The notes under the pieces were generated by a model. It did no database searches, was not told the DNA's origin, and saw nothing but the letters and a program-made list of their open reading frames with translations. A stretch of 64,000 nucleotides of DNA, taken from the IMG/VR virus record IMGVR_UViG_3300017917_001123, positions 1 through 64,000 of that record; one strand, 5' to 3'. Positions 24,353 to 38,849 of this stretch are shown here, piece by piece (position 1 is the first letter of the stretch; each line of letters opens with the position of its first letter). The translations under genes and the position numbers were made by a program.

Positions 24353-24599
24353 CGAACGCTATCGTGCTATTAAATGGGCAGAACAGCTTTGTCGAGATCT
24401 CATGGATCCTAGCAAAACTCCTAGAGTGCCGAAAACTATTCGGCAACGGGCTTACAGCGTTCTGCGGCATTTTCCCGAAGAATACTATTTGGCAATGTTA
24501 GCAGAAGCAAGGCCAGATATTATAGAACGAAGAGGTAAACCATTTGATCCTCTGTACAAAATGGTTAAAGATTACGAATTTAAAAAGGAAGAAAAATGA
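24339..24599 (+). CDS. Hypothetical phage protein
   Basis: [10 protein letters not shown]...LRHFP. Confidence 0.75.
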
Positions 24600-25216
24600 A
24601 CCTAGTACCAATGGTAGTTGAAAAGACCAGTCAAGGCGAACGTGCTTATGACATTTACAGCCGCTTACTCAAAGAGCGCATTGTTTTCCTAAACGGCCCT
24701 GTAGATGATCACAGCGCAAACTTGATCGTAGCACAGATGCTGTTCTTGGAAAGCGAAGATCCTACTAAGGACATTAACTTCTACATTAATAGCCCAGGTG
24801 GACTGGTTACTGCTGGTTTGAGCATTTATGACGTTATGCAGTTCGTTAAATGCGATGTAGCAACCTATGTTATGGGTCAAGCGTGTTCAATGGGTTCGTT
24901 CCTGGCACAGGCAGGTGCCAAAGGCAAGCGTTATGTGTTGCCCGAATCACGCACAATGATTCACCGTGTTAGCTCAGGTACTCCAGGTACCAAAGGTAGT
25001 GTTCACGTTCAAGAACTACAATTTGAAGACGCTAAACGCACTTTTGAAGAAAGCCAGCGCATTAATAAGCGTCTAACTGAACTGTATGTGCGCCACAATA
25101 CCGCAGGTAAGACCTACGAAGAAATGTTCGAAGCGATGAAATTTGATACATTTTTGGGCTCCGAAGAAGCGGTTGCTTGGGGTCTAGCAGACCACGTTAT
25201 CAGCAAGCACGAATAA
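24596..25216 (+). CDS. clpP: ATP-dependent Clp protease proteolytic subunit
   Basis: [19 protein letters not shown], catalytic SMG and MIH. Confidence 0.95.
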
Positions 25217-26711: not shown

Positions 26712-27263
26712 ATGACTTGGATCATTGATAAAACATTTGAATTCTGCTATGGTCACAGAGTTCACACACAAACATTAAACGGCGAATATGCCGCTGACCT
26801 AAAATGCGCTTGTCGCCATCTTCATGGACACGAAGGCAAGATGCAGGTATTCCTTACAGCACCGCAACTAGATAAAACTGGTATGGTTACTGACTTTAGA
26901 CACCTAGAATGGCTAAAGAAATGGATCAATACATATATTGATCATCAGTTTGTTATTGATAGGAACGATCCACTTTATGATAAAATTATTGGCAATCGTG
27001 GGCTTGTGCCTGTACATATTCCTGATACTGATCATGTCGCCGGATGGCATTTGGACCTCACTGGATTGGAGTCAAACTCTCCGGAGTATGAATATTACGA
27101 AGGGTTCATGGTAGTAGACTTTGTTCCAACTTCCGAAAAGCTCAGTGCTTGGATGGCTGAACTTGTAGAAGCCAAAATGAAGAAGCTCGGAGTAACTGTA
27201 CATCACATCGATTGGTGGGAAACTCCAAAATCTCGCTCTGTATTTTACCGAGACGGCTTGTAA
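26712..27263 (+). CDS. queD: 6-carboxytetrahydropterin synthase QueD-like
   Basis: GHR...CRHLHGH, GMVTDF, DH, PTSE, WET. Confidence 0.9.
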   Translation: MTWIIDKTFEFCYGHRVHTQTLNGEYAADLKCACRHLHGHEGKMQVFLTAPQLDKTGMVTDFRHLEWLKKWINTYIDHQFVIDRNDPLYDKIIGNRGLVPVHIPDTDHVAGWHLDLTGLESNSPEYEYYEGFMVVDFVPTSEKLSAWMAELVEAKMKKLGVTVHHIDWWETPKSRSVFYRDGL

Positions 27264-27292: not shown

Positions 27293-27466
27293 ATGATTTC
27301 ATATACTGTAACACTCGAAGAAGACCCCGCAACTGGCGAATTAATCATGCCATTTCCTCCCGACCTGCTTAACCAAATGGGTTGGGATTTTGGAGACACA
27401 ATTATTTGGCATGATAACCAGGACGGGTCTTTTTCTTTGACTAAGAAAGAGCAAGATGACAACTAA
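27293..27466 (+). CDS. AbrB/MazE-like small DNA-binding protein
   Basis: LIMPFPPDLL.QMGW..GD.I.W; leaderless after TATAAT. Confidence 0.65.
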   Translation: MISYTVTLEEDPATGELIMPFPPDLLNQMGWDFGDTIIWHDNQDGSFSLTKKEQDDN

Positions 27467-28487
27467 GCGAATTGGCTTTGCCTGTAAGTGGATCGACCAT
27501 GCCGGGCAAGTTGATGGCATCAAGCCCAAAGACGAATGTAAGATCTATAACACAGGAAGCACTACTGTGGCTTGGCTCAATCGTCAAACTAAGTCTGCGG
27601 CCGAAGAAAAGCTGTGGGATTTGATGAAAGGTAACATCGAATCTATTCGTAAACTAGTAACCAAAGTAGGAGAACAAGATGAGCACCTTAGAATGGTTCG
27701 CATTTCAAGCGATATTTTGCCTGTCTACACTGAGTCTAGTTGGCGGTATTTTTGGCAGTTACCTGACGTTCGACAATATGCGGAACGGCATTTTGCCGAA
27801 GTCGGTCGCATCGCACGTGATCGCAATGTGCGCCTTAGTTTCCATCCTGGGCAGTTTACCGTTCTTGCTAGCGATAATCCTGATATCGTAGAACGCAGTA
27901 TTGAAGAATTTGAGTATCACGTTGATATGGCTCGTTGGATGGGCTATGGACAAAAGTTTCAGGACATGAAAATCAACGTACATATCGCCGGTCGACAAGG
28001 TCCAGACGGCATCCGAAAAGTGTTAGGTCGACTAACACCCGAAGCACGTAACACACTGACAATCGAAAATGAAGAAATTACACACAATCTTGACACCTGC
28101 TTGGAACTTGCGGACGTGGTTCCAATCGTTCTTGACATCCACCACCATTGGATCAACTCTGGTGAATATATTCAACCTACTGATGACCGTGTTAAAAAGG
28201 TGGTTGATTCTTGGCGCGGCGTTCGCCCTACTTTACATTATTCTGTATCACGGGAAGAGCATCTTACTGACCATCCCGCAACCGTATCACCCTGTCTTAG
28301 TACGCTGATCGAAAGCGGGCACAAAAAAGCAAAGCTCAGAGCACATTCTAATTTCTACTGGAATACAGCAGTTAATGAATGGGCACTGAGCTTCTTGGAA
28401 ACGCACGATATCATGTGCGAATCTAAGGCTAAGAACCTTGCTAGCTTTGCGTTAGCCAGCGAGGCTGTTAAACTTAAACTGATTTAG
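27456..28487 (+). CDS. uvsE: UV-damage endonuclease (UvsE/UvdE)
   Basis: RISS, RLSFHPGQF, IEN, DIHHH, HYS, RAHS, E.KAK. Confidence 0.92.
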   Translation: MTTKRIGFACKWIDHAGQVDGIKPKDECKIYNTGSTTVAWLNRQTKSAAEEKLWDLMKGNIESIRKLVTKVGEQDEHLRMVRISSDILPVYTESSWRYFWQLPDVRQYAERHFAEVGRIARDRNVRLSFHPGQFTVLASDNPDIVERSIEEFEYHVDMARWMGYGQKFQDMKINVHIAGRQGPDGIRKVLGRLTPEARNTLTIENEEITHNLDTCLELADVVPIVLDIHHHWINSGEYIQPTDDRVKKVVDSWRGVRPTLHYSVSREEHLTDHPATVSPCLSTLIESGHKKAKLRAHSNFYWNTAVNEWALSFLETHDIMCESKAKNLASFALASEAVKLKLI

Positions 28488-28752
28488 TAGTTTTTTTGCT
28501 ACGTGTAGTTTTTGCCTTAACAGCAGGTTTCTTAGCTTCTGCTTTAGGTTTACGGCCAGCTGTCTTTTTAGCGGCTGGCTTTTTCTTTGGCTCTGCCGCA
28601 GGTGCTGGTTCAGCAACAGGTGCTGGTTCAGCAACAGGTGTTTCAACCTTGTATGGTGCTGGAGCTTCAGCAGGTGTTTCTACTTTCTTCGCAGGACGGA
28701 AAAGTAGATAACCAGCAATAACAACAACAACAAGAATAACAATAATTTCCAT
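28474..28752 (-). CDS. Membrane-anchored Pro/Ala/Lys-rich protein
   Basis: N-terminal TM, PVAEPA tandem repeat, basic tail. Confidence 0.7.
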   Translation of the reverse strand: MEIIVILVVVVIAGYLLFRPAKKVETPAEAPAPYKVETPVAEPAPVAEPAPAAEPKKKPAAKKTAGRKPKAEAKKPAVKAKTTRSKKTTKSV

Positions 28753-28867
28753 AATAGGGGTTTCCTTTAAAAAGTATGTGTTTTATTTACACCTATAAAT
28801 ATCAGAGAAGAAGAAAAATCTGATGCGTGACTTGCTTTGCTAACTAATAACATAGTATAATAACAGT

Positions 28868-29602
28868 ATGCTGAAAATAAAAAATCTAACCGCAGTAGCA
28901 CACGAACAACAAGTACTAACTGACATCAACTTACAAGTCGAAGAAGACGAAGTCCATGCGATCATTGGCCCAGAAAAAGCTGGAAAAACAGCCCTAATGT
29001 ACGCACTTGTTGGGTTACCTTATATAGAGGTAGCTGAAGGAACTATACACTATAAACGTAAAAAAATAAACGCTATGCCTATGCATGAGCGTAGTTTGAG
29101 CGGCATTGTTGGTGTATTTCAAGAAATGATCGAAGTGCCTAATTTAACAAATTGGGAGCTCTTAGAAGCTGTTTTAAAATATCGCAAAGATCCAAGAAAC
29201 ATAGACGATCTAAAAGAACTATATGTAACTCATTGCTTAATGCTAGGGCTAGATCCAATCCACGGTGATTTAGAAGCATCAAGCGACACAATGGACTATG
29301 AGCAAGCAGTTAAAAACGAACTGCTGATAATGTTCATGCTAAACCCTAAACTAGCACTAATTGATAACTTTGATGAAAAGTTAGACGAAGAAAATAAAAA
29401 GTTGCTAGCCGAAAGCATTGCTGATATGGCACACGCCGGTGGCCGAGCAACTATTGTATTTTCAAAAAACAAAGCAGTATTAGAAACAATCAATCCTACT
29501 CATGTACACGTTATGGTTGATGGAAAGCTAGTACTATCTGGTGGAAAAGAATTATTACAAAGGATAGAAGAAGATGGGTATTCAGAGCTTTCTGCAAGCT
29601 GA
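28868..29602 (+). CDS. SufC-like ABC ATPase (degenerate motifs)
   Basis: EVHAIIGPEKAGKT, PTHVHVMVDGKLVLSGG.EL...E..GY; Walker B DN, no signature or His. Confidence 0.75.
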   Translation: MLKIKNLTAVAHEQQVLTDINLQVEEDEVHAIIGPEKAGKTALMYALVGLPYIEVAEGTIHYKRKKINAMPMHERSLSGIVGVFQEMIEVPNLTNWELLEAVLKYRKDPRNIDDLKELYVTHCLMLGLDPIHGDLEASSDTMDYEQAVKNELLIMFMLNPKLALIDNFDEKLDEENKKLLAESIADMAHAGGRATIVFSKNKAVLETINPTHVHVMVDGKLVLSGGKELLQRIEEDGYSELSAS

Positions 29603-30404
29603 AAAGGGTGATCCGGATTGGCTGTTTAGTCCAGATGAATATTTTGGAAAACAATTTAAACTATCGGACGCAAATACTATAGAGCTAAAGGACGGAAGGA
29701 CCGATAGCATTACTCTACGCCTAAGTCCTAACGAATCAGGAATGCTAGCCAAGCATCTTCGTATTGATGTTAGGGAAGAAGCAACTCTCGACTTAATTGT
29801 TATTAACGAATCTAGTCCCAAAACACAGCAGGTCTTTATCTACGATATTAAAATTCGTGAAGGCGGCCTTTTAAACCTAGGGATCTTTGCCAAGGGCGGA
29901 AAGTTTAACAAACATATATTTCAAGTAAGCATTGAAGACGGTGGAAATTTTGCCAGCTATGGTTACATTAGCAACAACGACGGCGGCGATACTGAGGTCA
30001 TTACCAAAGTCTTTCAACAGGGCGTACATTCATTGTGTACGCAGTTAATTGGAGCCCAGGCCGGAAAAGACAGTCAAACAGTCTATCAAGGAATGGTTCG
30101 AATTGACGGTGAAGCAGAACTTGCTGAAGCTGGCTTAGAAAGCGTTAACATTGTTACAGGAGATAACGGTCGTTGCTGGAGTAGACCAGAAGTGTTGAGC
30201 GAAACAATTACAGCAAAGACCCGATACGGAAGCCAGACAACTTGTTTAGATAGCAACATTACCTATTATCTAGCAAGTAAGGGGTTGCCACCAGAAGTAT
30301 CTCAAAAGGTTGTACTTAACAGCTTTCAAACTCCAATCTTTAACCTTGTTAAACAGGAAGATATTCGAGAAGAAGTAGAACAGTTATTCAATACGCAAGA
30401 ATAA
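29574..30404 (+). CDS. SufD/SufB-like beta-helix protein
   Basis: YQG.VRI..A..A, SRPE, YYLASKGL. Confidence 0.7.
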   Translation: MGIQSFLQAEKGDPDWLFSPDEYFGKQFKLSDANTIELKDGRTDSITLRLSPNESGMLAKHLRIDVREEATLDLIVINESSPKTQQVFIYDIKIREGGLLNLGIFAKGGKFNKHIFQVSIEDGGNFASYGYISNNDGGDTEVITKVFQQGVHSLCTQLIGAQAGKDSQTVYQGMVRIDGEAELAEAGLESVNIVTGDNGRCWSRPEVLSETITAKTRYGSQTTCLDSNITYYLASKGLPPEVSQKVVLNSFQTPIFNLVKQEDIREEVEQLFNTQE

Positions 30405-30482: not shown

Positions 30483-33400
30483 ATGGCAACTACTTCATCA
30501 AATAGACTAATAATTAACCTTGGTTCGCAAGCAAACGATGGTACAGGTGACGCAATTAGAGCGGCATTTGACAAGGTTAATCAAAACTTTGAGACAATTT
30601 TCAACGTAGCAGGTATCGGTTCGGGCCTGTTATTCACTAAACTAGCAGATGCTCCAAGATTGCTGTCGGCCAACAAAATGTTGGTTACAGACGCAACAGG
30701 TTTAACTGTAACACAAATGTCTATAGTTGGTGCCCAGGGCATCCAAGTAACTGTAGACCAAGGCCAAAAGCGTGTTTTAATTGACGCAACAGTAACAAAC
30801 TTAGTTAACGATCCTAACCCAGTTCTTTCTAATAACTTGAGCGGCGGTGTTGTTAATCGCGGTATAAATTTTGCTGATCCAGTTGATGATCAAGACATCG
30901 CAACAAAGAAATGGATCTACGATAACTTCCTAAATCGCGATTCTAACTACCAATACATTTCAAGTACAAACCCAATCACAGGTGCCAATGTTACATCTAC
31001 GATCGTAGAAGGTAGCACACTACGCCACAATATCCAAATTCAGCCTACAGGTGTAAACACAGCATCTAACGCAGGAAAGGTTATTACACTATTTGACAGC
31101 GACGGTGTTAGCCTAAAAGACTTTGATGTGTCAGTAGGTGCTTGGAGACCAAGCCACGTAACTCGTAAAGATTATGTTGATACAAAGATTTCTTTACAGG
31201 GTATCGACACCATTGATCCAGAGACAGGACAAATTAATCCTAGCTTTGGTCAGATGACCGGACCTCTATACCTATCGAGAGATCCGCGAGAACAAGACCC
31301 AGGCAACGTAGCCGCAACAAAGGCCTATGTCGACTCTGTAGGTTTTCCAAGCCGTCAAAACTTTTATGTAAGTTTGAATGGTAGTGATGCTCGTTATGAT
31401 ATTCCAGCATACAAGCGAGGACGTTCTTTTGCTTGGGCTTTCCGTACAGTTAACAAAGCCGCTCAGGCCGCATTACAGTATTCCAAAGCATCTGAAATTA
31501 AGCTAGGTGTTTACCAGCGTGTTATTACTTCTAACAACTACAAAACTCCTGTTGAGATTTTAAGTATTGGTCCAGGAACAATTTCTGGAACATATAAAAT
31601 TAGTGTAACCTACACAGGCGGAAACGGTACTGATCCTTTCATTGAAAGAAGTATTCGTCCAGGACAGTTCTTACAAGGTATTAGTACAAACGCAATTGGT
31701 GAAATTCTAAACGTTGCTTTAGAGCCAGCAAGTAACGTCGAAGAATACTATGAAGTCCGTTTAGTCGACTACGCAGATACATTCGAATCACCTATTACTC
31801 CTAGCGACCTAGCAGGTGAAGTAACATTTACTCTGTTTGAGCCAAACTTAATTGAGATTCCAGATTTCTGGATCGGTTATAAGTTTGTAGTCGATAGTGT
31901 AGCAGGCGGCGGTGTCGGTGAAATTATTGGATTCGATTTATACTACCACCCTAACGGTAACATTTATAACCAAGTTATTGTTAGAATGAGCGAGCCATTA
32001 AGTAGCACAAACATTATTAGTGGTGACAACTGGCACGTTTATTCTGGTTACTTCAGCGTTGGCGAATCTTTACGCTACGGTCAAAAGTATAACAAACTAG
32101 AAATTTCTATTCTTGTTGAGTCTGGCGAATTTAACGAACAGCTACCGATTAGAATTGGCGACAACATTTCTGTTAAAGGTGATGAATTCCGTCGTACAAT
32201 GATCAAGCCAGCCTACGTTAGAGGTACAGCACGTTGCGGTATTTCTACAAGTAAGTGGGCTAACATTTGGTTCCGCAGAGACACGCAGATTGACGGTATT
32301 ATTGTTACACAATTAAACACATCAACTGATTATGCGGCTCTAACTACAGCAACTCCAGATGGTGTAACAAACGATGCTTCAACAGAAGTAATCACATTTA
32401 CACTAGGCTCAGGTACTGCTGATCCAGACTGGATTAAGAAAGTCTTTATTGGAGCAGGTGGCCGAGGTGAAATTAAAGCAGTTCTAGGTAATACATTCAC
32501 GGTTGACATTGCTGAAAACGACAACGGTATTAGAAGAATCGATAGTGCGGCACCTATTGCCGCAGGTGATTGGAGCATTTATGAACCATACAACTTTGGT
32601 TACCATTACCTAAGAGATGCTAGCCGTCCATTAAACTTCTTAGCAGGTCCTAACCCAGGTGGTTACAACTTCGCTTCAAAGATTCTATTAGACAACATCG
32701 AGTTTATTAAGTCCGAAGTAATTGGTTGGATCGACCAAACATACAGTGGCGGATTTACATATAACGTAGCTGACTTCCAACGCAACACTGGATTGTTAGT
32801 CGATGCGGTTGCTCAAGATTTATTATTCAGCGGAACAAGCCAAGCAACATTTGCGGGCTTGTTAAATTGGAATCGAAACGGCGTACAATCTGCCTTTGCT
32901 GGCGGTGTAACTATTGCTTCAAATGCTGTAACATACATTAAAGAATTAGCACAGAAAGTTGTCCAGAAAGATTTAACAGGTACAAGATACCAAAGTGCTG
33001 TAACTCAAACAACATCTGGCATTGGAGCGGCAACTCCAGCAGAAGCATCTACAATCGCTGCCGACATAGATGTTATTCTAAATATTTTCTTGAACGGAAC
33101 AGCTGATGTTCAAGATACAATTATTCCAAACGGATTAACTAAGAGTTCAGATCCTGATGTACAGAATGCTCACGATTTGTTACAAGCAAACAAGCTCTAC
33201 ATCCAAGCAGAAGCTATTGCCTTTGTTGAAGCAACCAAAGCTAATGGATTTACATACGATCAAAACAAATACACTCAAAATTTTGGATTTATTGTTGACG
33301 CAGTAAGTACAGACCTTCTATACGGTGGTAATAAACAATCTGTCCAACTTGGAACATATTACTGGAACTTTGATGGCAGTTCATCAGCAATTGCAAACGA

Positions 33401-36400
33401 ACTTTCACAAACAGTTGCGGCTTATAACTACATCAAATCAATTCTGCCAGATATCATCCAAGGTACCGCTCTAGCAGTAACACAACAAAATACTGTTCCT
33501 CAAGTTATTATTGGCTACGGTCCAGGAGATGCTTCTGCTGTAACACAAGCACAGGCTAAGATTGATGTTGTTACTAACATTACTTCTAACGGTCCAAGTG
33601 TGGCTAGTGCTCAAAGCACATTACCGTTAACAAGAAGCACTGATCCAGATATTATCAACGGAGCAATTTTACTATCAGCAAACAGAACATTTATTATTGC
33701 TGAAACTATTGCGTTTGTTAATAATTCTTTCTTAACAGGATTTGTTTACGATAGAGAAACTTGCCGTAGAGACATTGGCTTAATTGTCGATGCGTTAGCA
33801 TTTGACTTAAAGAACGGTGATATTAACTCATCAATTAACGCGGCTGATAGCTATTACGCAGGCAATGTTCAACAAGTTCTTCAAAACGAACTAGCACAAA
33901 CTGTGGGCGCAATCGGTTATATTAATACTCTAGCGCAACAACTATTTGATCAAACTCCTATTACAACACTATACGGTTTTGTTCCACAGAGAATAGACAC
34001 TATTATTGGTGAAGTAGGGGCAAAGGCTCAAGTTACCAACCTAACTACAGCAATGCAGGGTATCTTAAACAACGATCCTGCGTTCAACCCACCTAAGTAT
34101 AACGACGAAATGGACATCTTCTTAATGAACGATGCGACCATGTTACGTTACTTAGGCGGTAACGGTCACGGTGGCTTTATGAAGGTACTTGACCCAGAAG
34201 GACAAATTAAATCTAAGTCACCATATACTCAGACATGTTCATCATTCTCACAGAGTATTGGCCGACACAGATTTGCTGGTGGTTTCTTTGTTGACGGATT
34301 CTGCGGTAACTTGCCATTAGTTACAGCAGCCGGTACAGCAAGTCCAGATACAAACGGTAACTTAATTTACATTCCAGTAACTGGCGTGAGACGTTTACCT
34401 GTATTCCCAACTTACTTTATTCACGAAGGTGTTAAGTACGAAGCGGACTACATGCAGAATTATGACCCAGTTAACCAAACTGGTACTCTTGTTCTAAACC
34501 CAAACAACCCAGGTGGTATTAGTTCCGTAAGTGTTAACAGCGGAAATACACAAAACGAATTTAAACCGAACGTTGCTCAACTACCAGTAACATTTAGTTC
34601 TCCAGGCACACCTGGTGGTGCTACTGCTCGTGGTTATGCTGTAACTAACGCATCTGGTAATATACAAACCATTGTTATCACATTCCCAGGTGTAGGATAT
34701 GTAACAGAACCAAGTGTTAGCCTAGGCGGTGCTACGTTTAACTTTATTATCGACGGCGGTGCTATTACATCAATGTCTGTCAACTACGGCGGTATTGGTT
34801 ATACAACAGGTACACAAATTAATATTGCAAGTCCAGGCGGTGCCGGGTTAACTGCTACCGCAACAATTACAGGTGTTGACGGACTTGGCGCAATTACTTC
34901 TATCAATTTAGTATCAGGCGGTACAGGATACACTAGTGTTCCAACTGTTACATTTGGTCGTCAAGTATTCAGCGCAAACTTAGTAAACGGCTTTATTGGC
35001 AATTTACCATCAAAACTAGAACTAATTACTGCTGGTAACCGTTCTATGTTAGCCAACGACTTTACACAGTTAAACGATTTAGGCTATGGTATTTTTGCTA
35101 CCAACGGTGGATTCATCGAAAACGTTTCGATGTTCACTTACTACTGCTATACCTCATACTACGCACTGAACGGTGCTATTCTAAGAACTATTACAGGTTC
35201 TACAGCTTACGGTACTTACGGTCTAGTCGCAGAAGGTTCAAACCCATTAGAGGTACCAACTGCGGTTACAATGTCAGACGAATTAACACAGATTGCTACT
35301 GTTTATAATCAGGCTCCGTACATTAACGCCAAAGGCGGTGCTGACATTTATGTAACACTAGACAGCACCTACGGTTACCCTCCATACTCTAATGGGGAAA
35401 TTGAGATCAATCACAACGGTATTAGAAAGACATATTCTCTAAGATCTGCTAAACAGATTTCTGGAAACTTATATGCTCTATCAATTGATTCAACCGGTGG
35501 TGGATTATACGCTATTGTTCCGAACGGCGAGCCGTTGACAATTCGTGTTAAGTTTATTTGGAGACTAGGCGGCTTAAATGCTAAGACATTAACTCGTCCA
35601 AGTACAGTTTTAACACTGGCGGAAAACTCAATTTACAACTACCGTATTCTAGAGTACACAGACTTAGGTAGTGACTATGCGTTAGCTGAAGCTGATCAGT
35701 CATATGACTACATTCAACTAACTCCATACAGTCAGAGTAACCTATATCGCCAAGGTGTTGGTCGCCCAACTATCAGCGTTGCTGGTAGTGGTTACACTTC
35801 GACAACTACACAGTATGGTGTAACATTTGACAGTCCTCCATCAAAGACTGCGGTAGTTAACGGTGTTCAGGGAACTGTTGATAGTCCAGTAACACAGTTA
35901 TCGATCGCAAGTTCTAGCGGAGCAATTCACCCTGGTATGAGAATTACTGGTGCTGGCGCTATTGCTAACCAGTACGTAACTTGGGTGAGCTTGGATAGAT
36001 CTATTATTCAAACAAGCCAGGCACAGGTTTGGTCGACTGCAAGTGCTACACTAACATTTGTTGGTACTACCGCAACTGGTTATGCCAAGGCCAACGGAAC
36101 AAGCATTACTGGAATCACAATTACTGATCCCGGTACTGGTTACGACACAGCGCCAGGTGTTACAATCGTACCCGGAAGTGGTGTACAAGCTCAGGCAACT
36201 GTTTCCTTAAGCGGTACAAGCGGAACTAACATTGTTAAGGTTCTTCCTTTAAATGGACAAGATACTGCTCGTATTAACATTGGACTAACAAGCCCAACTC
36301 CATACTATTACGTATTTGGTTACGAAGGTCAGACTTATAAGATTACAGATTATAAGACTCCTGTTCAAACAGGTCAAGCATGGGGCGAAATTCAAATTTC

Positions 36401-38849
36401 TGGTTACAATAACGCATTGGCTACTCTAACAAGAGAAATGATGCTAGATCCATTGTATGCCGGTGTAACTAAAAACACTCCAGGATCTGTTACTGTTCAA
36501 ATTTCAACATTACGTGCTACAGCTCACGATATGATTGACGTCGGTACTGGCGGTTACGCAACTTCCAAGATACCGAACGACTTATACGGACCTCCAACAA
36601 TTACTCCAAACCCTGCTCAAGAAGTTCTTGAGAAAGGTAAAGGTCGTGTTTACTATGTAACAACAGACCAGGACGGTAACTTCCGCGTTGGTAAGTATTT
36701 TGCCGTTGACCAAGGCCGCGGTACTGTTACAATTAGTGCTCCAATTAGCTTAACTGGTATTAGTAAGTTGAGTTTCAAGAAGGGCGTCGAAGTTGACGAG
36801 TTCTCTAAAGACGACACCATGGCAACCGGTAGCCTAAGCAAGGTACCTGTAGAAACAGCTATTATCGGTTACATTGATAAACGTCTAGGTATTGATAAAT
36901 CTGGCTCTGTAGCAACTGGTATTATTGGCCCAGCTGTTATGGCGCTAAACGGTGTTAATGCTATGACTGGTTCCTTAAACATGGGTTCCAACAAGATCAT
37001 TAACCTACAAGTTCCGACAAGTTCAAGTGACGGCGCAACTAAAGGTTACGTTGACGGCAAGATAAGCCTAGACGGTATGGATGAAAACACAAATGATGGC
37101 GGTCAAGATGCCGGCATCATGAATGGTCCATTACGTCTAAATGCTGATCCGGGTATAATTACCGCTGTAACAACAGCAACAGTAAACATCGGTAACACAG
37201 TTGTTTACTTAAACTCAACAGCCGGTTTGTATAAAGGCATGCAGTTGAATACTAGCGGTTTTGCTCCTGGCGCATTTATTTCGCAGATTAATAATAGTAC
37301 TGCTATTACCGTGAGCGCGGCCGCAGTAGGTCAGGTATTAAACGGCGTAACTGTTACATTTGATCCAGTTCGCCAGGGCGCAACAAAACGTTATGTCGAT
37401 CGTTCAGCACAAATTACTAAACTACGTGACGTTGTTTTAACAAGTGCGGCAGATACTGACTTATTAATGTTTGGTGGTTTACTAAGTGCTAACAGCAATA
37501 CTTCGACTCCGCTGTACGAAGCAAGTCGTAGCGTTATTAACGTAACAAATAATACTTCGGCAATTACTAATACAGCATCATCAAGTGGCGGTGGTAGTGA
37601 TATTACAGTATCTCGTTCAAACAATCAAGTAACATTCAAGTTAGTCGGTGGACAAGGTGCGGCAAACCCAATTACTAACTATCACGTTAACGACAATGCG
37701 GCAATTGCCCAAAGCAAGTTAAACATGCAGGCCGCAGGTGTAACACCAAGTTCAGCAGGCGTTGTTCAAGCAAGTCGTGGTCTAGCAGTATTTGATCAAT
37801 ATGTGTTTACAGCAACTAACGGTTGGATTAGCTTAGTCGATTCTGCTACTACTACCGACGGTGTTGCTCCAAGCAAACTACGTCAAGTAGGCGCAGGTGG
37901 TGCATTAATTGGTAACACAAACTTAGCCGCAGGCGGAGCAATGAGCTACTTGTCTAGCTCTACTGTCCGTGCTTGGTTAGGTGTTATTGATTCTGCGTCA
38001 GGCGGTACATTTAACGGTGACCTAAACGTTAATAATATATTTGCCAATGCGGCTGGTACATACGACATTGGATCTTCAGGAACTCGATTTAGAGCAATCT
38101 ATGGCGGAACTGGTAGCTTTAGCGGCAACGTAACTGATAACGGTAACCGTGTACTAACAAGCGTAACATTAAGCGCAGGTGACAACATTGGTGTAGCAAG
38201 TTCTAAGACTGGCGCAGACTATGCTCTATCTGTAACTAACTTAGGTGTACGTACTATTGCTGGTACTGCTAACCAAGTGTTTGTTGGTGGTGGATCGGCA
38301 ACTGCCGCAACAACTGGTACTGTAACACTAAGTTTACCACAAAACATTCATACTGCGGCAGATGTTCAGTTTAACAAGGCAAGCCTAAAATACCTAACAG
38401 CGGTAGATGCTGGTAGTGGTTGGGCCGTTGTTCAAGGAACATGGAAACTAGACACAAATGCTAGCTTCCAAGCAACATACGCTGACTTGGCAGAACGTTA
38501 CACCAGCGATGTTCAATACGAGCCAGGAACAGTTCTAGTGTTCGGCGGTGAAAAAGAAGTTACAATCAGTTCTGTTGCTAACGATCGTCGAGTAGCAGGT
38601 GTTGTTTCTACAAATCCTGCTTACAACATGAACACATCAATTGAAGGTGTTGATATTGCTCTACAAGGCCGTGTACCATGTAAAGTAGTAGGATACATTA
38701 AGAAAGGTGACCTAATGGTAACTAGTTCGATTCCAGGCGTTGCGACAAGCAATGATGATCCTAAGACAGGTACTATTATTGGTAAGGCATTGGAAGATTA
38801 TAACAGCAATGATGTTGGCATAATCGAAGTAGCAGTAGGAAGACTATAA
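30483..38849 (+). CDS. Giant tail fibre/baseplate structural protein with C-terminal intramolecular-chaperone-like domain
   Basis: ANDGTGDAIRAAFDKVN N-terminus, ATK.YVD repeats, G.GYT..P repeats, YADLAERY...ALQGRVPCKV...IIGKALE. Confidence 0.85.
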   Translation: MATTSSNRLIINLGSQANDGTGDAIRAAFDKVNQNFETIFNVAGIGSGLLFTKLADAPRLLSANKMLVTDATGLTVTQMSIVGAQGIQVTVDQGQKRVLIDATVTNLVNDPNPVLSNNLSGGVVNRGINFADPVDDQDIATKKWIYDNFLNRDSNYQYISSTNPITGANVTSTIVEGSTLRHNIQIQPTGVNTASNAGKVITLFDSDGVSLKDFDVSVGAWRPSHVTRKDYVDTKISLQGIDTIDPETGQINPSFGQMTGPLYLSRDPREQDPGNVAATKAYVDSVGFPSRQNFYVSLNGSDARYDIPAYKRGRSFAWAFRTVNKAAQAALQYSKASEIKLGVYQRVITSNNYKTPVEILSIGPGTISGTYKISVTYTGGNGTDPFIERSIRPGQFLQGISTNAIGEILNVALEPASNVEEYYEVRLVDYADTFESPITPSDLAGEVTFTLFEPNLIEIPDFWIGYKFVVDSVAGGGVGEIIGFDLYYHPNGNIYNQVIVRMSEPLSSTNIISGDNWHVYSGYFSVGESLRYGQKYNKLEISILVESGEFNEQLPIRIGDNISVKGDEFRRTMIKPAYVRGTARCGISTSKWANIWFRRDTQIDGIIVTQLNTSTDYAALTTATPDGVTNDASTEVITFTLGSGTADPDWIKKVFIGAGGRGEIKAVLGNTFTVDIAENDNGIRRIDSAAPIAAGDWSIYEPYNFGYHYLRDASRPLNFLAGPNPGGYNFASKILLDNIEFIKSEVIGWIDQTYSGGFTYNVADFQRNTGLLVDAVAQDLLFSGTSQATFAGLLNWNRNGVQSAFAGGVTIASNAVTYIKELAQKVVQKDLTGTRYQSAVTQTTSGIGAATPAEASTIAADIDVILNIFLNGTADVQDTIIPNGLTKSSDPDVQNAHDLLQANKLYIQAEAIAFVEATKANGFTYDQNKYTQNFGFIVDAVSTDLLYGGNKQSVQLGTYYWNFDGSSSAIANELSQTVAAYNYIKSILPDIIQGTALAVTQQNTVPQVIIGYGPGDASAVTQAQAKIDVVTNITSNGPSVASAQSTLPLTRSTDPDIINGAILLSANRTFIIAETIAFVNNSFLTGFVYDRETCRRDIGLIVDALAFDLKNGDINSSINAADSYYAGNVQQVLQNELAQTVGAIGYINTLAQQLFDQTPITTLYGFVPQRIDTIIGEVGAKAQVTNLTTAMQGILNNDPAFNPPKYNDEMDIFLMNDATMLRYLGGNGHGGFMKVLDPEGQIKSKSPYTQTCSSFSQSIGRHRFAGGFFVDGFCGNLPLVTAAGTASPDTNGNLIYIPVTGVRRLPVFPTYFIHEGVKYEADYMQNYDPVNQTGTLVLNPNNPGGISSVSVNSGNTQNEFKPNVAQLPVTFSSPGTPGGATARGYAVTNASGNIQTIVITFPGVGYVTEPSVSLGGATFNFIIDGGAITSMSVNYGGIGYTTGTQINIASPGGAGLTATATITGVDGLGAITSINLVSGGTGYTSVPTVTFGRQVFSANLVNGFIGNLPSKLELITAGNRSMLANDFTQLNDLGYGIFATNGGFIENVSMFTYYCYTSYYALNGAILRTITGSTAYGTYGLVAEGSNPLEVPTAVTMSDELTQIATVYNQAPYINAKGGADIYVTLDSTYGYPPYSNGEIEINHNGIRKTYSLRSAKQISGNLYALSIDSTGGGLYAIVPNGEPLTIRVKFIWRLGGLNAKTLTRPSTVLTLAENSIYNYRILEYTDLGSDYALAEADQSYDYIQLTPYSQSNLYRQGVGRPTISVAGSGYTSTTTQYGVTFDSPPSKTAVVNGVQGTVDSPVTQLSIASSSGAIHPGMRITGAGAIANQYVTWVSLDRSIIQTSQAQVWSTASATLTFVGTTATGYAKANGTSITGITITDPGTGYDTAPGVTIVPGSGVQAQATVSLSGTSGTNIVKVLPLNGQDTARINIGLTSPTPYYYVFGYEGQTYKITDYKTPVQTGQAWGEIQISGYNNALATLTREMMLDPLYAGVTKNTPGSVTVQISTLRATAHDMIDVGTGGYATSKIPNDLYGPPTITPNPAQEVLEKGKGRVYYVTTDQDGNFRVGKYFAVDQGRGTVTISAPISLTGISKLSFKKGVEVDEFSKDDTMATGSLSKVPVETAIIGYIDKRLGIDKSGSVATGIIGPAVMALNGVNAMTGSLNMGSNKIINLQVPTSSSDGATKGYVDGKISLDGMDENTNDGGQDAGIMNGPLRLNADPGIITAVTTATVNIGNTVVYLNSTAGLYKGMQLNTSGFAPGAFISQINNSTAITVSAAAVGQVLNGVTVTFDPVRQGATKRYVDRSAQITKLRDVVLTSAADTDLLMFGGLLSANSNTSTPLYEASRSVINVTNNTSAITNTASSSGGGSDITVSRSNNQVTFKLVGGQGAANPITNYHVNDNAAIAQSKLNMQAAGVTPSSAGVVQASRGLAVFDQYVFTATNGWISLVDSATTTDGVAPSKLRQVGAGGALIGNTNLAAGGAMSYLSSSTVRAWLGVIDSASGGTFNGDLNVNNIFANAAGTYDIGSSGTRFRAIYGGTGSFSGNVTDNGNRVLTSVTLSAGDNIGVASSKTGADYALSVTNLGVRTIAGTANQVFVGGGSATAATTGTVTLSLPQNIHTAADVQFNKASLKYLTAVDAGSGWAVVQGTWKLDTNASFQATYADLAERYTSDVQYEPGTVLVFGGEKEVTISSVANDRRVAGVVSTNPAYNMNTSIEGVDIALQGRVPCKVVGYIKKGDLMVTSSIPGVATSNDDPKTGTIIGKALEDYNSNDVGIIEVAVGRL

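Follow-up and report, generated by a model that had tools for sequence, protein, structure and literature searches.

We describe two overlapping genes, sufC′ and sufD′, in the first 64 kb of the IMG/VR virus record IMGVR_UViG_3300017917_001123 (the window, 64,000 nucleotides), which is a jumbo phage genome of 331,570 bp from a pond metagenome, rated 93% complete by CheckV. SufC′ is an ATP-binding cassette (ABC) protein that has lost the residues for ATP hydrolysis, SufD′ is a short relative of SufD, and relatives of the phage carry a complete SUF (sulfur mobilization) operon at the same locus. Both genes are kept under strong purifying selection. In the reading that we prefer, and to which we give about an even chance, the pair is a selectively maintained remnant of this operon, whose products form an ATP-binding, non-hydrolysing complex that still serves iron-sulfur (Fe-S) supply. 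The two genes and the motifs of SufC′ are located as follows.

28868–29602, + strand: sufC′, a 244-residue nucleotide-binding protein of the ABC type, derived from SufC and degenerate in its catalytic motifs (profile and alignment matches, 96 homologues)
29574–30404, + strand: sufD′, a 276-residue short SufD-type beta-helix protein (profile matches, family alignment, AlphaFold2 (AF2) model)
29574–29602, + strand: dual-coding overlap of sufC′ and sufD′, 29 nt, with EDGYSELSAS and the stop codon at the 3′ end of sufC′ and MGIQSFLQA at the 5′ end of sufD′, both peptides conserved
28967–28990, + strand: Walker A of SufC′, GPEKAGKT, residues 34–41, intact (GPNGSGKS in E. coli SufC)
29120–29122, + strand: Q-loop Gln85, retained in the alignment to E. 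coli SufC
29285–29320, + strand: remnant of the ABC signature, DTMDYEQAVKNE, residues 140–151, the canonical FSGGEKKRNE being gone
29351–29368, + strand: Walker B, LALIDN, residues 162–167, with invariant Asp166; ILDE of E. coli has become LIDN and the catalytic Glu171 corresponds to Asn167
29465–29467, + strand: switch (H-loop) position, where TH has become SK and E. coli His203 corresponds to Lys200

Motif states of SufC′ and selection on the pair

By far the best-matching family of SufC′ is SufC, despite scores below the respective cut-offs: the sufC model TIGR01978 matched with an E-value of 1.9e-44 and 151.9 bits (equivalog cut-off 212.8), and NF007134 with 124 bits (cut-off 400). E. coli SufC (2d3w/5awf) matches over residues 1–241 (E-value 8e-30), with about 30% identity over the full length. 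A search of PHROGs gave merely a generic 'ABC transporter' and a family of no assigned function for the pair. In a preliminary description made from the DNA alone, the protein had been called a catalytically degenerate SufC, and residue alignment to E. coli SufC bears out every motif change stated there, including the signature, where FSGGEKKRN aligns with DYE--QAVKN of SufC′. The only cysteine of the protein is C123, and there is none at the C-terminus.

Across 92 cluster representatives of SufC′, there is no exception to the Gly and Lys of Walker A or to the Asp of Walker B (100% conservation), the Q-loop Gln is nearly as constant, and the ABC signature is absent from every one. The 27 representatives of the window's clade show no constraint at the position of the Walker-B Glu, where Asn (13), Gly (4), Asp (4), Ser (2), Thr, Glu, Cys and Ala (1 each) all occur; their switch position holds Lys in 24 and Arg in 3. 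The sister group (65 representatives) has kept the Glu in 62 and the switch His in 51, and its replacements of the latter are Asn, Ser, Arg, Lys and Glu, with Asn, Gln and Arg seen on the SufC tree; the His was lost several independent times in this group. Fixed binding residues next to free catalytic ones would be the pattern expected if nucleotide binding is needed and hydrolysis is not. SufC′ thus probably still binds Mg-ATP with hydrolysis lost, and would be unable to form the ATP-sandwich dimer that depends on the signature. Degenerate sites of this kind are familiar from TAP1 and from nucleotide-binding domain (NBD) 1 of CFTR, which have kept Walker A, have replaced the Walker-B Glu and the switch His, and bind ATP without hydrolysing it. 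In these transporters, however, the degenerate signature lies on the partner NBD, such that one site stays competent, whereas SufC′ should have no competent site with its own copy, because all three defects lie on one polypeptide.

A word search recovered 96 clusters of SufC′ and 149 of SufD′ with intact frames, on phage-like contigs of which many are 100–358 kb long. Relative to the closest relative for which DNA was available (L062; 89% amino-acid identity for SufC′, 94% for SufD′; dS about 1), the ratio of nonsynonymous to synonymous substitution rates (dN/dS) is 0.04–0.06 for SufC′ and 0.024–0.027 for SufD′, and the differences between two near-identical contigs are all synonymous. A value near 1, which the preliminary description had taken as the mark of decay, is thus not what we find. 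That the catalytic motifs have gone, along with every partner gene, is what one would see in pseudogenes decaying after the loss of an operon. Yet the reading frames have stayed open in over 90 clusters of SufC′ and over 140 of SufD′, dN/dS lies at 0.02–0.06, far below 1, and SufD′, with 40 invariant columns in an alignment of 50 diverse members, is even more conserved than SufC′. In view of these values and of the purely synonymous differences between near-identical contigs we have rejected decay, to which we assign next to no probability. The 29-nt overlap, in turn, implies that translation of the two genes may be coupled.

SufD′ and its predicted complex with SufC′

SufD′ matches the Pfam family SUFBD_core (PF01458) with 70.5 bits, above the cut-off of 27, and the sufD model TIGR01981 with 82.7 bits (cut-off 222, not reached), compared to about 20–24 bits for SufB models. 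The lone sequence gave no match among PDB chains, but a profile of the family did, with E. coli SufD at 3e-17 (65.7 bits) and SufB at 4e-11 (45.8 bits). The AF2 model (mean predicted local distance difference test score (pLDDT) 89.9) consists of a beta-helix followed by three helices, and Foldseek matched it solely to SufB, SufD and SmsB structures, with query-normalised TM-scores (TMq) of 0.6–0.68 and 5awf, 1vh4 and 2zu0 at the top. The short SufD-like partner of the preliminary description is therefore a SufBD beta-helix, closer to SufD than to SufB; among the matches listed, its length is 272–296 residues, mostly 272–276. Three of its elements matter for what follows.

30174–30176, + strand: Cys201, invariant in the family alignment of 50 sequences
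30225–30227, + strand: Tyr218, at the position of the cluster ligand SufD His360/SufB His433
30240–30326, + strand: C-terminal helical region, residues 223–251, with a YYLxSKG motif, predicted to contact SufC′

Cys201 aligns with A416 of SufB and V343 of SufD and therefore is not at a canonical ligand position; its equivalence to C405 of SufB was considered and ruled out, as C405 aligns with Ser190. The states of positions 201 and 218 go together with the gene content of the phages: those with sufS, whether or not sufB is also present, have His at 218 and Ala at 201 (Cys in one contig), and all phages that have the sufC′D′ pair alone have a variable residue at 218, Tyr in the window, and an invariant Cys at 201. 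Further residues, N112, K113, H114, E141, K145, Q168 and Q172, are likewise invariant or nearly so and, together with C201, follow the pitch of about 29 residues of the modelled helix, which suggests that the conserved residues of SufD′ may line up in a single stripe.

Structure prediction of SufC′ with SufD′ gave an interaction prediction score from aligned errors (ipSAE) of 0.80, compared to 0.00 for the best control; this mark is reached by 58 of the 80 complexes with solved structures and by 2 of the 110 pairs that were mismatched. At least 95% of the contacts agreed between runs, and the pLDDT of the partner was at least 80. The predicted contacts of SufC′ lie in the Q-loop and the helical subdomain (residues 48–51, 71–106, 154 and 158) and those of SufD′ in the C-terminal helical region, where Y232, L233 and G237 are invariant in the family alignment; they coincide with the known SufC–SufD surface. 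Since similar complexes have already been solved, the interface is to be read as a likeness rather than a proof. SufC′ would accordingly be expected to bind SufD′ via the canonical interface.

The pair thus resembles E. coli-type SufBC2D and SufC2D2 (5awf, 2zu0) in the beta-helix with its C-terminal helices, in the predicted interface surfaces and in the adjacent, overlapping genes. It differs in that SufC′ has no signature, catalytic Glu or switch His, in that SufB, SufS and SufE are missing from the genome, and in that SufD′ is much shorter than SufD (276 versus 423 residues), does not conserve His360 and has the new, invariant Cys201. The SMS system of M. jannaschii, SmsCB (MJ0035/MJ0034), shares the two-gene layout of an ATPase and a short SufB/D-like beta-helix protein, but its sequence relationship to the window pair is far weaker (59 and 24.7 bits). 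In addition, the ATPase SmsC is active and binds a [4Fe-4S] cluster through C-terminal cysteines (PMC12192291), which SufC′ does not have.

The locus in related phages

In many jumbo-phage contigs, the pair is found in a recurrent order: ClpP, further genes, a PTPS protein, UvdE, a small reverse open reading frame (ORF), in some cases superoxide dismutase (SOD), sufC′, sufD′, a giant protein and a He_PIG protein. Four IMG/VR contigs have a complete sufB-C-D′-S-E-T-A operon in the same place.

L042, 2577–7737, and L046, 2577–7683: full SUF operon, also present on L047 and L050

These operons encode a full-length SufB (474–484 residues), a SufS with 393–410 bits to Aminotran_5, a SufT of the FeS_assembly_P family and a SufC with canonical motifs (ASGGE[KR]KKNE, ILDEIDSGLD, ITHQP). 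Six further loci (L037–L041 and L045) have no sufB and retain sufC (with ASAGE and ILDD), sufD′, sufS and an A-type carrier; in the L041 genome, IscU lies between sufS and the A-type carrier. In the remaining relatives sufC′D′ stands alone with the signature lost, and the window's clade has additionally lost the Glu and the His. The short SufD′ scores 295–475 bits to the family profile across all these operon states and 295–318 bits in the full-operon phages, compared to 42–49 bits for the full-length, cellular-type SufDs (430–435 residues) of other IMG/VR contigs. By these scores, the short SufD′ is orthologous throughout, and the full operons are not recent captures, because their SufD′ belongs to the same family. 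In the SufC tree, which was midpoint-rooted, and in which the states were polarised on the grounds that all cellular SufCs have the motifs, the signature-less SufCs are monophyletic (100/99; 34 rows, the window included, all without the canonical signature), and within them the window's clade is set apart by a long stem (0.71; 100/100). The full-operon phages share with the window the slot that is flanked by UvdE/SOD and the giant protein, the short SufD′ family and its N-terminal DPDW and NKH motifs, and differ in having kept sufB, sufS, sufE, sufT and sufA, a canonical SufC (ASGGEKKKNE, ILDEIDSGLD, ITHQP) and the SufD His. Judging from these comparisons, the ancestor of sufC′D′ appears to have been a phage SUF operon at this locus that was complete and canonical.

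That the window contains neither SufB nor SufS, as had been noted before, holds for the entire record of 331,570 bp, which has one SUFBD match, one SufC-like match and no Aminotran_5 match; it has no SufB, SufS, SufE or cysteine desulfurase. The search of the genome for other suf genes that the preliminary description had suggested revealed no further SUFBD or SufC-like gene, but it did reveal an iscA-iscU-iscA cluster at 282596–283652, that is, IscU (187 bits to NifU_N) and two A-type carriers, after which come genes for a Trp-halogenase-like protein and an ATP-dependent DNA ligase. Clients of Fe-S supply are abundant in this genome, with 14 Radical_SAM matches above the cut-off at 240–271 kb. 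These belong to a tightly packed island of radical S-adenosylmethionine (SAM) genes, at least 14 in number, at 240000–277000 of the record, some with SPASM or B12-binding domains; all ten large ORFs scanned in it were radical SAM. The complete or near-complete relatives with the pair have one SUFBD gene each and differ in the remaining inventory: G003 has IscU, two A-type carriers and 6 radical-SAM matches, G005 one A-type carrier and one weak radical-SAM match, and the 99% complete G002 has 11 radical-SAM matches, no IscU and no A-type carrier. Of the Fe-S biogenesis families for which G002 was searched, which did not include cysteine desulfurase, sufC′D′ are the sole members present.

The distribution of the pair was also approached from its neighbour UvdE, which was found on more than 597 viral contigs. 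Of the best 80 of these, with UvdE 71–80% identical, one (L051) had already been found via SufC′ and carries the pair, and none of the 79 new loci (L148–L226) has sufC′D′ near UvdE. In the majority of these 79, the place near UvdE is taken by IscU and/or an A-type carrier, as a rule together with SOD, and a 338.5-kb relative, 97% complete, has no SUFBD gene anywhere. The UvdE/SOD slot hence seems to be a place where cassettes for Fe-S and oxidative-stress functions are exchanged, and that it holds alternative Fe-S cassettes argues against a structural role of the pair tied to the giant gene. The 0 of 79 new loci and the absence from the 97%-complete relative led us to reject the pair as a core gene of the lineage or as one tied to the giant protein; it is accessory and fits an auxiliary metabolic cassette.

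The genes that delimit the locus in the window are the following.

27456–28487, + strand: UvdE UV-damage endonuclease, upstream anchor of the conserved locus
30483–38849, + strand: giant ORF of 2788 residues, downstream anchor, followed by a He_PIG-domain protein

Upstream in the conserved order lie a ClpP protease (24596–25216), a QueD/PTPS-family protein (26712–27263) and UvdE. The small divergent ORF between UvdE and sufC′ (28474–28752, – strand; 92 residues) has a hydrophobic N-terminal segment and a repetitive Pro/Ala/Lys-rich tail; its counterparts have 92–96 residues in many relatives, and 80 and 124 in some. For the giant ORF, the precomputed table records no Pfam match, and the corresponding proteins of relatives range from 1684 to about 2855 residues. 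An Fe/Mn SOD directly precedes sufC′ in many relatives, and the genome of the window has no SOD. Ahead of sufC′, at 28832–28861, a TTGCTT element is followed by an 18-nt spacer and a TATAAT that ends 6 nt before the ATG; the element scored below the threshold of the promoter scan, and there is no clear Shine-Dalgarno sequence. By its layout, the sufC′ transcript could be leaderless or have a very short leader.

The phage GenBank collection contains no close relative. Microcystis phage MaAM05 was considered as the same variant and rejected, as its sufBCDS-iscU genes are canonical and its SufD is full-length. Canonical SufC or other ABC ATPases are encoded in many phage-labelled GenBank records (Listeria, Enterococcus, Staphylococcus and Salmonella fragments), and most of the other SufC matches in this collection look like host DNA under phage names.

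Possible roles of the pair

Most likely, SufC′D′ would act as a hydrolysis-independent accessory in Fe-S cluster supply, and two routes are conceivable. The pair might dock on the host SufB–SufC or SufS–SufE machinery, replacing the host SufD–SufC half, or iron or a cluster might be held at a new site based on Cys201 and be handed to the IscU and A-type carriers of the phage. Along either route, it would supply the many radical-SAM enzymes of the phage during infection in oxidising, UV-exposed water. Several observations weigh against the preferred reading of a maintained remnant in Fe-S supply. The canonical ligand positions are not conserved in SufD′ (SufB C405 corresponds to Ser190, SufD H360 to Tyr218), and the radical-SAM load does not follow the pair, as two relatives that carry it have one weak match each. 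The order of operon states is typological, because the sufB-less form with sufS is an offshoot of the full-operon clade and no proven ancestor, and the score for the predicted complex may echo the model's memory of 2zu0 and 5awf. No RNA runs holding the locus were found, and an attempt to infer the host from the SufB of the relatives pointed to no single one: it is 63–68% identical to proteins of many Pseudomonadota and other phyla, with matches spread accordingly.

The preliminary description had proposed that the pair poisons or redirects host Fe-S assembly, or has been repurposed. The latter is compatible with the data. The former would make SufC′D′ a dominant-negative complex that binds host SufB or SufC and blocks the SUF scaffold, switching off host Fe-S assembly or diverting sulfur and iron to the phage IscU. 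A retained SufD-binding surface and Walker A, with all elements of hydrolysis lost, is indeed typical of a dominant-negative ABC subunit, and a phage with its own IscU and carriers and no desulfurase must tap host sulfur. We nevertheless do not favour poisoning and hold a blocking or redirecting role to be distinctly improbable: the genome itself encodes, besides IscU and the two A-type carriers, at least 14 radical-SAM enzymes that need clusters, G002 with its 11 radical-SAM matches has no IscU or A-type carrier to which flux could be redirected, the ancestor at the locus was a complete, working operon with canonical motifs, simple blocking would not need the invariant Cys gained in SufD′, and dN/dS is nowhere near the value of 1 that would have spoken against the pair being maintained. 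Somewhat less improbable, yet still not a reading we lean towards, is a self-sufficient minimal scaffold, a SufC′2D′2 tetramer similar to SufB2C2 or SmsC2B2 with a pair of Cys201 residues at a SufD′ homodimer interface. The two-gene layout resembles smsCB, the invariance of Cys201 is confined to phages without SufB, and SufD homodimers with two SufC exist (2zu0); on the other hand, SufC′ lacks the C-terminal cysteines that bind the SmsC cluster, both SMS and SufB2C2 still have the motifs of an active ATPase, the bit scores place the pair nearer to SufC and SufD than to SmsC and SmsB (107 versus 59 bits and 65.7 versus 24.7 bits), and the record encodes no sulfur donor.

A function outside Fe-S biogenesis, for example in sensing or regulation, with another metal or cofactor, or as a chaperone of the neighbouring giant protein, has a small but real chance. 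The canonical ligands are lost, the scores stay under the SufC and SufD equivalog cut-offs, the pair always lies directly upstream of a protein of 1700–2900 residues, and some relatives keep it with almost no radical-SAM genes. The adjacency to the giant gene is inherited, however, since the full SUF operon occupies the same place; related jumbo phages, including the 97%-complete 338-kb genome, do without the pair, which is thus no core virion or assembly gene; and most UvdE-anchored loci have IscU and/or an A-type carrier in its stead, which is another Fe-S cassette. With much the same tentativeness, if not slightly more, we envisage that jumbo phages evolved a novel module for handling Fe-S clusters or iron without ATP hydrolysis, in which Cys201 and a polar ladder (N112/H114, E141/K145, Q168/Q172) would hold a cluster or iron and ATP-bound SufC′ would serve as a static clamp or as a switch.

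Phage genomes that combine Fe-S assembly genes (A-type carriers and IscU) with many Fe-S client enzymes and ClpP have been described in an earlier study (PMC5332604), and the genome of the window likewise joins Fe-S assembly genes with a radical-SAM client load. The Fe-S passages of that study concern A-type carrier and IscU genes and name neither SufC nor SufD, nor a degenerate ATPase. Our literature search returned no description of a phage SufC/SufD pair, of a signature-less SufC or of a full SUF pathway in these jumbo phages. Our comparisons show that some jumbo phages carry the complete SUF pathway, and that one locus next to UvdE and SOD alternates between full SUF, sufCD′S-iscU-iscA, sufC′D′ alone and iscU-iscA, in genomes rich in radical-SAM enzymes.

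For SUF biology, the roles of SufD and of the SufC2D2 sub-complex, and the need for ATP hydrolysis, are still debated. The phage pair, a C–D module selected for without SufB, SufS or any hydrolysis motif, amounts to a natural separation-of-function experiment on this question. Its conservation with a dead ATPase suggests that the SufC–SufD module has a job independent of ATP hydrolysis, and if the site around Cys201 does hold iron or a cluster, it would show what the SufC–SufD half of the SUF scaffold does on its own, which has long been unclear.

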